Part shown: piece after piece, positions 17,944-21,800 of the stretch
How positions within the stretch are numbered: the stretch's first letter is position 1
How the letters are laid out: every line of letters starts with the position of its first letter
Assembly (NCBI RefSeq): GCF_963853765.1
Contig: NC_088858.1
Location: forward strand, 8,804,001 to 8,868,000
DNA from: Magallana gigas
Lineage: Eukaryota
Direction of reading: 5' to 3'
Length of the DNA: 64,000 nt
Program-made: the position numbers and the translations under genes
The notes under the pieces: generated by a model
Seen by the model: only the letters and a program-made list of their open reading frames with translations
The model's database searches: none
What the model was told of the DNA's origin: nothing

Positions 17944-18009
17944 GTTACTTAGGCAACTGGCAGGTGACAAAGCCGAGCGTCCTTTATCTGGAGGGGGGCT
18001 TTTTATAAA
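17944..18009 (+). promoter_or_regulatory. Putative promoter of the orphan ORF: X-box plus TATA
   Basis: GTTACTTAGGCAAC at 17944-17957, flanked by E-boxes CAGCTG and CAGGTG. TATAAA at 18004-18009. ATG at 18098. Confidence 0.5.
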
Positions 18010-18097
18010 CCGTCCCACGATAACAAAGGGGTAGCTCTATGTGTACACCCCACGGTAGAGCGTCTAGCAATCATTTAGTCTACGCCTCAATGTCAAC

Positions 18098-18415
18098 ATG
18101 ACCAGAATTCGGCGCTCCAACAGAATATACAACGAAAGAAGGGTCAATCTTGTAGATGCTGAGAGAAGATTTCGGCGCTCGTGTGAACAAATTGTGATGT
18201 TGAACCGTGCCCTGACCTCCCTACAGAAGAGGTACGACAACGCAAAACGGAGGAATGTCCGGTCCTTCCGCTACCATCTCCGCCTCCGTCTAGCCGTCAT
18301 AGAAGGCATGAGAAACGTGTACTATGACTATGCCCACGAGAAAGCCAAGCAAGTAGCCGAGTTGCGGAGAGAACTGTTCGGAGAGATCGTAGAAATCGTG
18401 TCTGAAGAGAGCTGA
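18098..18415 (+). CDS. Intronless 105-aa Arg-rich, probably helical protein of unknown function
   Basis: ATG-to-TGA ORF, GC-richer than its surroundings, 21 Arg in 105 aa. TATAAA lies upstream and AATAAA at 18851-18856. No family recognised. Confidence 0.65.
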   Translation: MTRIRRSNRIYNERRVNLVDAERRFRRSCEQIVMLNRALTSLQKRYDNAKRRNVRSFRYHLRLRLAVIEGMRNVYYDYAHEKAKQVAELRRELFGEIVEIVSEES

Positions 18416-18873
18416 GCTAAAGAGGTGTCAGCAAAATCGCAAAGAAATCCCGGTGTTACAAATGGTACATAGGATTACCGAAATGCCCGTGATGTCGTGT
18501 AAATCCATGTTCTTCAAAGACCGTTAGATGCGATGGGTTTTGTGAAATCTGGACCTACGTTGCATTTTTTGCTTGGGCTGCCGCACTTCTACATGTCGTA
18601 TGTGTATGACTGTGTTCAAAGCGAATACTACCGGTATATTTCAAGGAATGTTAATTCAGCTCCTAGTGCTTAATTGTGTTTCACTGGGCATTCCCTATGT
18701 ATACCAGAATTCACTGAATCATTCGATGACTTATGAGTTGAACTGAACTCTGTAATTAATGTGATCTTGTTTATATAAGTCAAAAAAGCTGTAATAACAA
18801 AAAAATTTTCTAGTCAATACTTTTAATACACAAGTTGAATGCTTATTCTCAATAAATTGATTTATACACAATT

Positions 18874-21800
18874 TTAATAGTTTTTCGAATAGTCTTCATT
18901 ACTTGGAATATCGGCATTCCTTCGGGTTATTTGCTCGAAGTAAGCTCCCTGTGACCTTGTATAGTATTTCTTTGACAGCTCCTCTCCATAAAATAAATTT
19001 GTATGAGCAAACAATTCATATCCATGAGGCATTATTCCACGTTTCTTGACATCGTGGAAGATGGGTAACCCAAACAGGGTTCCAAACTCCCAGTCTGGAT
19101 TATCCTTCATCAGGTCCTCCTCCAACTCACAGTTCTGACGAAACAACTTGAGGACCCTGGAAGACAGAAAGTCAATTAAATCTCGGCCTGCCACAATCAT
19201 TTAGAGGATTGGTATTAATGAACATAAATAGCATTCACCAAAGTTGCAACAACGACAATGAAGAGGAACTACAAATAAACAATGAAAGCTATTCCCTATT
19301 TTATTTTTACAGAGAAATACATATAACTGACCAACTCTGTTTTCATTTTGGTATAATAGCTACCTACTTTAATTTGTAGTTTGGTAACTGCATTTAGTTG
19401 ACAAATTCTGTTTTCATTTTGGTATTCTATCTACCTTCTTCAAATGAAAGTGTTTGATACATAGTATGTATTACATACATTTAGATCTTTGACTAGAGGT
19501 ACTATGAACAAGCTAACAAATGATACCCCATGCTAAGAAAATATGCAAATACTAAAGTATTTCCCTATTGATATGTAATGGTAAAACCCTCTTTTTCTTC
19601 CAGTGACCTTGAACTTGAAGAAATGACTATAGCTCAAGGTCAGGCTATATTTTCTGGTTACAGACAATTTCATTTTCCATAACAAAAAATGGCCTTGATG
19701 AGAATTATGTATTTTTTAAACGATGATTTTGAACTTGCACAAATGACATCATGATCATGACAAACCCTCAGACCACAAGCAATCTTTGTGTGAATTAGGA
19801 ACTTCCAATGTTTTGCCATAACAGATCAAAAAAATTATGCATTTTTCTTTACAGTGACATTAAACTTGCCCAAATGACCTTGGGCCAAGATCAGAACACA
19901 ACCTCAGGTCAGAAGCAATCTTTTTGTAAAGTACAGAGTAGGAACTTCCAATGTTTTGCAATAACAAAGATATGGACTTGATATTATTGCACAGTGTCAG
20001 ATGGACAAGGGAATTCTATATCCTATATACCCCCCCAACCCCCAAGAAAAAAAAACACTGTTTGCATGGTGAATAACAAAGTAAACACATGAAAACTTAG
20101 CAGAAAAACAGATTAATAACTTATGAAGTAGAATATTGACATAACTAGGTTTTGTGTATATTCAGTTTTTAAAACATTTAAAAAACTAAACATGCTAAAC
20201 TTTTCACTAAACCATGAGTGCTGATATTAGAAGTCCTGGGACAAAATATGAGAACCCATTTTGTTTAAAGTCAAACAATTTTGTTTCTAGACAAAAGAAA
20301 GATCACATAAATTGTTAAACACCCATTATGTTTATGGATATAAACCTTTAAAATTGCAGTTCAATAGATATTTTGGTTGTGTTTGTTGAGGGTCTGTTAC
20401 ACCCCCCCCCCTTTCTGTAAACCATATTAAAATGGTAGTCTACAATTTTATGCATAAAACTAACAACACCTGATACCCCTTTTCAAACTTTCAAAATAAC
20501 TGTTTCATGCTAATTCATTGCATTTACACTTACATTCTATCCTTTTCTGCCATCAACAAAGGTTCTAATGCGATGTTTGCCTCTGTATTTTCTAGTTGAT
20601 GCATTCTGTAAAATAAGGTACACAGATGTGAGGTAATGCTACAGAGGGTGGAATATATTCTGTATATGGAGAAATATTTGCCCCGTTTTATCGCTCCCCC
20701 CTTTAGACCTCATTGTCAGTGGGCAAATCAATACTGTGTTATCAATTTAATAGAGAGAGTATCTATTATATACCGGTAGACAAAAGTGTAAAATAGAGAA
20801 AAAAAATGTGGTGTGAAAATAACCCTGTATACAGTAAAATGTTAGTTCAAGTACATTATTATAATACTGATTACTTTATTTTAAAGGAATTTTTATACAG
20901 CAATTATTGAACTTCAGACCATGCAAATGTTTTTTTGACCACACAGGACATTCAGTCCTGTGTAATCAAAAAACAGACAGGACTGATTGACCAAGAATAA
21001 GATATATTTCATTTGTAAAATTTCAAAAGCCTACATTTTTCTATTCCTCTTTTATATCAGTTATACTGAGCTACAATACGTCACACATGTAACATCAGAG
21101 AGGCTCAATGGTATGTAACATTCTCTTATCAAAGAGACAAAGAATTGTTTAAACATGATTTTTTTAAAGCCCAAAAATTTTCCCTGTTTTTTGTTTATTG
21201 ATCAAAGCAATTTTCCAAAAGGTGTAATACAAAATATTTACAAGAATGCCAAAAAGCATTTGCATGTAATGAAAACTAAAGTCGGTCATTGAAGTTTTTT
21301 TAAAATAGATTTATTTGTCAACTTTATTACCAGGTAAGCAGGAATAAGGAATGCATGATTATTATACCCCGCTGCGAAGGAGGATTTTATACCCCCGCTC
21401 CGAAGGAGTAGGGGGTATACTGTTTTACCCTTGTACATCTGTCTGTCTGTACCCAACAAAAATTTGGGTTGCATTTTTCTCAGCAACTATTTATTGCAGA
21501 TGCTTGAAATTTTAACACATTATTGGTTTAGGCATGCAATAAAATTGGATATATTTTTGTATTAATCAGAGGTCAACTTCCTGTTAAATGATGACTTTGT
21601 TTATTTTTAGCCAAACAAATTTTCGCCAAAGATTTCTCAGCGATTATTTAATGCAGATGCTTGAAATCTTAACACACTATTTGTGTAGGTATGCCATATC
21701 GTGGAATCTATTTTTGTAGTAATCAGATTCCAACTTGCTGTTAATTGTCAACTTTGCCTATTCACATCAAAGCGGGGGTATTACTAGTGAACATTGGCTC

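Follow-up and report, generated by a model that had tools for sequence, protein, structure and literature searches.

The open reading frame (ORF) that starts at position 18098 of the window, i.e. the whole 64,000-nucleotide stretch of Magallana gigas DNA analysed here, can be assigned by its sequence to a large unnamed mollusc family of proteins of about 100 aa, most of whose genes end in a histone-type 3' signal that this copy lacks. We consider it probable (roughly 0.6) that this is a family of histone-style genes and that the window copy represents its stem-loop-less variant, encoding a nucleic-acid or chromatin protein linked to replication or to the embryo. The features of the locus, which is free of N stretches, are compiled in Table 1.

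Table 1 Features in and around the hairpin protein gene; positions are those of the window.
Feature	Position	Strand	Remarks
TATAAT-like box	17836..17841	+	Aligns with GGTATAAT in two oyster orthologues; conserved block starts about 30 nt downstream
Conserved upstream block, promoter or 5'UTR	17868..17980	+	About 79% identical to orthologue
E-box CAGCTG, X-box-like palindrome, E-box CAGGTG	17935..17967	+	Best-conserved module in the alignment
X-box-like palindrome GTTACTTAGGCAAC	17944..17957	+	One mismatch from the RFX consensus GTNRCC-N0-3-RGYAAC
TATAAA	18004..18009	+	Unconserved in orthologues
AACAAAGG, putative SOX/TCF-type motif	18022..18029	+	Invariant in four species; factor name inferred
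Single-exon ORF, 105 aa and TGA stop	18098..18415	+	Product: basic two-helix hairpin protein with short acidic tail
AATAAA, candidate poly(A) signal	18851..18856	+	Unconserved; without read support; overlaps the 3'UTR of the opposite-strand neighbour
NDUFA13/GRIM-19 last exon, convergent neighbour	18806..19156	-	Pfam PF06212; coding part 18874-19156

The ORF is as compact as the sequence-only reading had described it, with 20.0% Arg and a pI of 10.6 in its product, a stop codon at 18413-18415 and a GC content of 0.48-0.50 compared to about 0.30 in the flanks. Between the window ORF and its oyster orthologue L037, the differences by codon position amount to 18/5/64, with a dN of 0.08, saturated dS and 39% identity at third codon positions, and the L037-L040 comparison gave an omega of 0.078. 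The dN/dS analysis among homologues that had been proposed yields a value of about 0.08, and three species have an unbroken frame that begins and ends alike. This omega and the conservation of start, stop and length show that the ORF is a genuine protein-coding gene under strong purifying selection; it is single-copy and has a single coding exon. The claim that the gene is intronless holds for the coding part, while an intron in the 5'UTR is possible, sense-strand reads not having been found. The DNA of the locus is single-copy except for a 54-nt palindrome located 360 nt upstream, and the synteny with NDUFA13 (GRIM-19), which was suggested for inspection in other bivalves, is indeed kept between oyster species that have diverged to saturation at synonymous positions. 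In public contigs, the SNP density is lower within the ORF (1.3 vs 4-5.8 per 100 nt); these contigs were retrieved by exact protein identity, which biases within-species pN/pS and leaves SNP density as the usable measure.

The gene had been taken for an orphan, but its own genome contains about 74 paralogous matches, and homologues occur elsewhere by the hundreds. A word search returned 97 matches and an exhaustive profile search 1,101 clusters, and the window protein matches the family profile with an E value of 3e-45. Every named cluster from the profile search is molluscan, the named members belonging to Magallana, Ostrea, Pinctada, Mizuhopecten, Tegillarca, Mya, Dreissena and Nucella. A narrow lineage-specificity, as initially assumed, is thus not tenable, since the family extends across bivalves and to at least one gastropod, a range that refers to the named clusters, as further cluster look-ups yielded no names. 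The members share a conserved core (C-x-Q-I...L-N...R-Y...A, then F-R-Y-x-L-R-L-R-L-A-x-x-E-G-x-R-N-x-Y-Y-x-Y-A), which spans both helices and whose invariant and near-invariant columns in alignments A1 and A2 are present in the window protein. The paralogues are likewise under purifying selection (omega 0.18-0.38), and the clade of the window copy has a support of 82/90. In the literature on 5S spacer ORFs, non-histone stem-loops, K1PH20 and Polintons with stem-loops, we found no description of the family.

According to the AlphaFold (AF2) model (pLDDT 90.3), which comprises two helices at residues 2-52 and 55-94, the protein is predicted to be a single long antiparallel alpha-helical hairpin that ends in a short acidic tail, in agreement with its earlier characterization as basic and helical. 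The impression that no known domain is present was equally borne out: Pfam contains no family for the window protein, for 10 long homologues or for 114 family members, the sole Pfam match among homologues being a SWIM finger in an Ostrea gene model that is probably a fusion. Among PDB sequences, neither the protein nor the family profile retrieved anything below an E value of 0.09. In Foldseek searches against the PDB, the best E value was 0.17 and the matches, all above 0.1, were ordinary hairpins; VIA structure comparison again retrieved generic hairpins (rmsd 1.2-2 A over 80-95 residues) with a Z of about 10, which is below the meaningful level for helical proteins, and feature searches of the ESM Atlas either scored no higher than 0.81 or found no match. 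The same antiparallel hairpin shape occurs in ROP, ESCRT-III alpha1-alpha2, prefoldin and SMC/Rad50 coiled coils, which are without sequence similarity to the window protein. Fold scores of this kind are common for any long hairpin and are uninformative on function, and none of our results links the protein to chromatin.

Replication-dependent histone genes are organized in tandem arrays and carry a 3' stem-loop and a histone downstream element (HDE), at which their transcripts are processed by SLBP and U7; in animals, to our knowledge, hardly any mRNAs other than theirs are regarded as using this pathway. We scored a 3' end as histone-type if a 16-nt stem-loop was located within about 100 nt of the stop codon and followed by a purine-rich HDE. 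Most paralogues end in such a canonical histone stem-loop and HDE, the typical family gene being intronless, with a TATA promoter and short UTRs, and carrying the stem-loop 27-97 nt past the stop codon, followed by the downstream element TTCGAAAAGATG. The combination was identified behind paralogues L004, L009, L012-L017 and L027 and homologues L042, L043, L045, L047 and L067, and Rfam RF00032 matches lie behind paralogues in the same genome, in Pinctada and in Tegillarca. The signal of the paralogues, AAAC-GGCTCTTTTCAGAGCC-AC and then TTCGAAAAGATG, is of the same type as that behind the true H2A gene L064 of this genome. Moreover, about 50 paralogues alternate with 5S rRNA genes in a tandem array with a 1.67-kb unit on another chromosome. 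The paralogues thus share intronless structure, TATA box, tandem arrangement and 5S rDNA linkage with replication-dependent histone genes; for the latter, a passage in PMC6204057, citing Eirin-Lopez et al., mentions cases such as Mytilus in which the arrays are linked to 5S rDNA. They differ from them in the encoded protein, which is a hairpin without a histone fold: neither the window protein nor the 114 family members matched PF00125, and the AF2 model contains two long helices only. Linkage to the histone clusters themselves was rejected: these map to C2:20.1 Mb and C3:37.6 Mb, and no paralogue lies near them.

The window copy differs from this scheme in that its 3' flank contains no stem-loop, neither by regular expression nor by RF00032 even at E<=10, and no remnant of one. 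The signal is also lost in the oyster and pearl-oyster orthologues. However, members of the same clade from scallop and other bivalves (L045, L047, L067/68) retain it, and from this distribution we conclude that the stem-loop is ancestral and was lost by the oyster and pearl-oyster copy.

As judged from their genomic sequence, most family members would be made via the SLBP/U7 pathway, either in bulk as the DNA is replicated or as maternal mRNA deposited for the cleavage stages. The protein could then be a small nuclear factor associated with nucleic acid or chromatin, whose hairpins would pair into helical bundles. H3.3 and H2A.Z are single-copy, polyadenylated relatives of multi-copy stem-loop genes, and the window copy may relate to the array copies in the way that such a replacement histone variant relates to the replication-dependent genes. 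It resembles these variants in being a single-copy relative of multi-copy stem-loop genes, in the missing stem-loop, in its own distinct conserved promoter and in encoding the same kind of protein; it differs from them in that the family is not a histone family and in that polyadenylation and expression are only predicted for the window copy. The gene would be active in a limited cell type and not in S phase, and bHLH and/or RFX factors might determine that cell type. A bolder version, which we put forward tentatively and would not yet favor, holds that a non-histone host family uses the histone mRNA pathway, was co-amplified with the 5S rRNA genes in oysters and supplies a bulk, lineage-specific component of chromatin or of the cleavage nucleus, with the window gene as a re-wired, stem-loop-less "replacement variant" under a cell-type-specific promoter. 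Here, a full histone 3' signal occurs in a conserved non-histone host family, across bivalves of several orders and with one 50-copy array among 5S rRNA genes. If the transcripts truly end at the stem-loop, molluscs would be an example from nature in which the machinery for histone mRNA also makes a different abundant protein, and the family would become a candidate for a previously unrecognized chromatin or early-embryo factor. In that case, the window gene would record the opposite step, in which a family member leaves the histone pathway and gains its own promoter.

Upstream of the ORF, the window and L037 are identical at 50/63 and 39/50 positions of the conserved block, compared to 45% in the 3' flank and to the 39% at third codon positions of the ORF, where synonymous sites are saturated. 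Runs invariant in a three-way comparison cover 17935-17950 and 17956-17967, and both E-boxes are retained in L037 and L040; the module of E-box, X-box and E-box is conserved in oysters, but not in pearl oyster. The X-box, which is located 154 nt before the ATG, is unchanged in L037-L039 (88%-identical orthologue), carries two substitutions in L040 (81% orthologue) and is absent from the more distant orthologues L041, L045, L047 and L066, including those of pearl oyster and scallop. X-boxes with at most one mismatch occur six times in the window vs 5.5 +/- 2.1 times in shuffled sequences, so that the weight of the motif comes from its conservation only and not from its frequency. Since L040 keeps both flanking E-boxes but has two substitutions in its X-box, the constraint on the module may lie on the E-boxes. 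Thus, the promoter signals named in the sequence-only reading are present as such, but the X-box is at chance frequency and partially conserved, and TATAAA is not conserved; the TATAAT-like box is a possible candidate for an alternative TATA of a start site near 17868.

The X-box had also given rise to the idea of an RFX-driven gene for a microtubule-binding ciliary or sperm protein, comparable to the small helical-hairpin inner proteins of the axonemal doublet. The window gene indeed resembles RFX/X-box ciliary genes in its size, its hairpin shape and the position of the motif about 150 nt before the ATG, the motif is unchanged in the 88% orthologue within the best-conserved promoter block, the protein is basic, and several axonemal doublet proteins of 100-120 aa are among the Foldseek matches (TM 0.74-0.76). 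However, the gene differs from that class in a motif that is not above chance, is altered in L040 and is missing from the pearl-oyster, scallop and other orthologues; it shows no sequence relation to such genes, the family profile matched no axonemal protein in the PDB, and the axonemal fold matches are non-significant ordinary hairpins whose VIA scores are likewise too low for helical proteins. In addition, the stem-loop architecture of the family suits dividing cells or embryos and not post-mitotic ciliated cells, and the histone-like organization therefore argues for replication-coupled or maternal expression rather than for a role in cilia. We thus regard a ciliary or sperm function as unlikely. 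Alternatively, the gene could stem from a virus or a mobile element, for example a Maverick/Polinton, either as its passenger or by domestication. Elements of the latter kind also use the histone stem-loop in this genome: about 25 other non-histone stem-loops sit about 12 kb from Maverick polymerase (PolB) genes, behind unrelated ORFs, and for this reason the stem-loop by itself does not indicate a chromatin function. The multi-copy nature of the family, the Ostrea gene model in which a SWIM finger is joined to the hairpin domain, and the presence of a MULE-type ORF at a distance of 3.6 kb from one C8 paralogue are compatible with such an origin. The Maverick ORFs likewise are non-histone ORFs followed by stem-loop and HDE, but their products are unrelated, rich in Pro, about 450 aa long and Cys-rich at the ends, whereas the hairpin genes occupy host loci with conserved synteny: no PolB match was found within hundreds of kb of any paralogue and no family match in the Maverick-rich regions of C1. 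Together with the long-term purifying selection, the single-copy DNA and the NDUFA13 synteny of the window gene, at whose locus the only flanking inverted repeat is weak (26 nt at 81%), this makes a viral or transposon nature of the present gene very improbable.

The ORF could also be a silent relic that is no longer expressed as protein and lies beneath the read-through tail of NDUFA13. The strand-resolved RNA evidence that had been proposed as a check did not reveal expression: two raw-read RNA runs contained no sense reads over the ORF (depth about 0), and the two to three reads found there have the orientation of the minus-strand neighbour NDUFA13, i.e. they are antisense. Moreover, the 3' signal of the family is lost and no conserved poly(A) signal has taken its place. 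These runs, however, sample two tissues or conditions, and the codon-position pattern and omega across species with saturated dS, the unbroken frame and shared start and stop of three species and the conserved promoter block all argue against a relic, which we consider the least probable of these alternatives, at the very margin of what we would entertain. The previously noted polyadenylation signal does exist as AATAAA at 18851, but it is unconserved and falls into the 3'UTR of the convergent gene, 23 nt from the stop codon of the NDUFA13/GRIM-19 exon, and the whole 3' flank shows 45% identity to the orthologue, which corresponds to the random level. RNA contigs that span the ORF are spliced to NDUFA13, and a read-through of about 1% accounts for them. 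The apparent RNA coverage of the ORF is thus NDUFA13 read-through, and tracing it to this source is, besides the removal of the false "orphan" label, a practical gain of the analysis. NDUFA13 itself has a splice junction at 19156, and poly-T loose ends mark its poly(A) site near 18806.

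On evolutionary grounds, we conclude that the single-exon ORF of the window, whose 105 residues with 20.0% arginine (computed pI 10.6) match the description in the sequence-only reading, is a conserved coding gene. An 88%-identical orthologue of 105 residues (oyster loci L037-L039) and an 81%-identical one of 108 residues (oyster locus L040) were retrieved from public assemblies, and start codon, stop and length are maintained among them. The window copy and L037 differ at 87 nucleotides (18/5/64 across codon positions 1/2/3), with a dN of 0.08 and saturated synonymous sites, while the comparison of L037 with L040 (dS 1.02, dN 0.079, omega 0.078) indicates a constrained coding sequence. 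Since the gene is in both cases convergent to a GRIM-19/NDUFA13 exon, the window locus and L037 are orthologous. Palindrome, TATAAA, ATG, stop and AATAAA were all found where they had been described, and the ORF is indeed richer in GC (0.48-0.50) than its surroundings (about 0.30).

Coordinates of features at the window locus (plain numbers) and of examples of Pro-rich stem-loop loci elsewhere in the same genome (G000)
Feature	Position	Strand	Remark
Conserved TATAAT	17836	+	orthologue alignment
Best-conserved block	17935-17967	+	E-box CAGCTG, X-box, E-box CAGGTG
X-box-like palindrome GTTACTTAGGCAAC	17944-17957	+	
TATAAA	18004	+	
Conserved AACAAAGG	18022	+	orthologue alignment
ORF	18098-18415	+	ATG at 18098, TGA ending at 18415; single coding exon
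NDUFA13 poly(A) site	near 18806	-	poly-T loose ends
AATAAA	18851	+	
NDUFA13 last exon	18874-19156	-	convergent to window gene
Pro-rich stem-loop locus (of L048-L062)	C4:56071900-56073341		
Pro-rich stem-loop locus (of L048-L062)	C9:25703077-25704500		
Pro-rich stem-loop locus (of L048-L062)	C10:9523942-9525300		

The gene belongs to a large mollusc family, and its earlier designation as an orphan is refuted by 97 homologues in a word-index search, about 74 matches in a six-frame search of its own genome and 1,101 clusters at E<=1e-3 (620 at E<=1e-10) in an exhaustive profile search. Most matches are environmental or Logan contigs without a name, and every named member is a mollusc, namely Magallana gigas (K1PH20, a paralogue at C5:37.4 Mb), Ostrea edulis, Pinctada imbricata, Mizuhopecten yessoensis, Tegillarca granosa, Mya arenaria, Dreissena polymorpha and the gastropod Nucella lapillus. 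P0001-P0004, longer entries with 100% identity to the window protein, do not represent real extensions: the gene caller had read through the TGA stop. In agreement with the view that the protein has no recognisable domain, Pfam held no family for it or any of 114 relatives, and no relative was found among PDB sequences with either the window sequence or the family profile. The window protein is predicted to fold as a hairpin: the AlphaFold2 model (39-sequence alignment, pLDDT 90.3, pTM 0.72) contains two long antiparallel helices (residues 2-52 and 55-94) and then an 11-residue acidic tail; a helical protein with an acidic tail had been expected from the sequence. Conserved residues are located in helix 1 (C29, Q31, N36, R45, Y46, A49) and helix 2 (F57, R58, Y59, L61, R62, L63, E69, G70, R72, N73, Y75, Y76, Y78, A79). 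Foldseek returned no match under E 0.17, and VIA-align scored many unrelated hairpins (ROP, ESCRT-III, prefoldin, SMC) at a Z of about 10, too low to be meaningful for long helices.

Many paralogues carry a histone-type 3' end. At C5:44.125-44.206 Mb (L002-L008, L028), about 50 of them recur at intervals of about 1.67 kb, and each unit comprises, all on the same strand, a 5S rRNA gene (117 bits), a TATATA-box promoter, an intact 116-aa paralogue with 62% identity to the window protein and, 27 nt past the stop, a histone 3' stem-loop (RF00032, 35.4 bits) with a histone downstream element (HDE). Crassostrea 5S units measure about 1.1 kb, with U2 as the sole linkage mentioned in a literature summary (PMC6204057). 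Because a second 5S array (G000:C4:10183800-10187300) repeats every 1.085 kb, the known Crassostrea unit size (PMC6204057), and has no hairpin-family match, the genome contains two kinds of 5S unit. The stem-loop signal also follows the single C5:37.4 Mb paralogue and those clustered on C8 (38.5-38.6 and 40.64-40.70 Mb); all stem-loop paralogues share AAAC-GGCTCTTTTCAGAGCC-AC and, after about 10 nt, TTCGAAAAGA(A)TG, which is also the downstream element of a genuine H2A gene (L064) of the same genome. The histone clusters proper are at other sites (C2:20.1 Mb and C3:37.6 Mb). With an omega of 0.18-0.38 between pairs, the paralogues are likewise coding. Among homologues, Pinctada has three stem-loop genes in tandem (1.27-kb spacing), and the stem-loop is present in Tegillarca, Mizuhopecten and the further bivalve loci L047 and L067/68.

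The maximum-likelihood tree places the window protein together with the two oyster orthologues (95/88); the trio then joins P0020 and Pinctada P0022 (82/90), and deeper branches lack resolution. Within the window's sequence type, stem-loop and HDE are kept in Mizuhopecten L045, L047 and L067/68 and absent from the window copy, L037, L040, Pinctada L041 and the homologue L066, which has an AATAAA at +79. From this distribution we conclude that the histone-type signal is the ancestral state of the family and was lost in the oyster and pearl-oyster lineage, including the window copy. Stem-loop members would use the SLBP/U7 route and be produced either in large amounts along with replication or as maternal mRNA. 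The protein may be a small factor of the nucleus that associates with nucleic acid or chromatin; relative to the stem-loop members, the window copy would then act as a replacement variant does for histones.

Judged by alignment, the oyster copies share a conserved upstream module, since 17868-17980 is 79% identical among three oyster species vs 45% in the 3' flank, despite saturated synonymous sites. The TATAAA and AATAAA proposed as TATA box and polyA signal are present, but neither is conserved, the latter like the rest of the 3' flank. The X-box-like palindrome lies within the best-conserved block; however, matches with up to one mismatch number 6 in the window vs 5.5 +/- 2.1 in shuffles, L040 has two changes in the X-box with both E-boxes intact, and more distant orthologues have no X-box. 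Thus, the constraint may act on bHLH sites, an RFX site, or both.

Raw reads represented two conditions, one poly(A) run and one random-primed single-cell run. Depth in both was 36-80 over NDUFA13 and 0-0.85 over the ORF, where the few reads run in the direction of the minus-strand neighbour and none is in sense. Two RNA assemblies contain contigs running from 17758 or 17838 across the ORF to 19156 and on into the spliced NDUFA13 exon; given the very high abundance of this mRNA, about 1% of read-through would suffice to account for them.

A dead ORF, with which the missing sense reads would agree, is hardly credible beside the constraint on its codons. The ciliary or sperm role suggested earlier, although its X-box is embedded in conserved sequence, is possible but improbable: the motif alone occurs at chance frequency, and the small axonemal proteins among the Foldseek matches (E >=0.17) are generic hairpin background. 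Viral or transposon origin could draw on about 25 further stem-loops that a genome-wide RF00032 scan detected on C1, C4, C9 and C10. Each has an HDE and comes 27-71 nt after an unrelated Pro-rich ORF (about 330-460 aa, no Pfam domain) with a Cys-rich, RING-like motif at its end, about 12 kb from a Maverick/Polinton PolB gene. However, PolB was found near none of the hairpin-family paralogues, and the window locus is single-copy in DNA except for a 54-nt palindromic repeat (17686-17739), which makes such an origin very unlikely.

This repeat is a near-perfect 15+15-nt palindrome (CAGAGGCATAAATAA / TTATTTATGTCTCTG) found at >=60 places in the genome with 85-97% identity; RNA contigs break there, and the repeat probably marks one end of a small mobile element. 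A 44-nt direct repeat (86% identity) has one copy in the 3' flank of the gene (18525-18568) and the other 2 kb upstream (16502-16545). Low, continuous minus-oriented coverage (depth 0.3-1.5, single-cell run) extends over 17151-17735, with RNA contigs at 17259-17450; because a zero-depth gap separates it from NDUFA13, it may represent a separate, unannotated minus-strand transcript. Elsewhere, L054 (G000:C1:29031565-29033060, minus strand) is a 133-aa ORF without Pfam match, neither histone nor hairpin-family, that has a histone-type stem-loop 27 nt downstream. L064 (G000:C8:10800449-10800916) is a solitary H2A with an SQEY end (H2AX-type tail), stem-loop and HDE, outside both histone clusters. 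A 168-aa paralogue subfamily at G000:C3:5894800-5911600 (L010, L011; omega 0.18 between copies) has a 70-residue N-terminal extension and no stem-loop. Finally, a MULE/ZSWIM1-3-type ORF (L015:1855-3288; G000:C8:40638854-40640287) lies 3.6 kb from a C8 paralogue, and the Ostrea edulis gene model P0111 combines a SWIM finger with the hairpin domain; the adjacency may be conserved, or the gene model may be a fused one.
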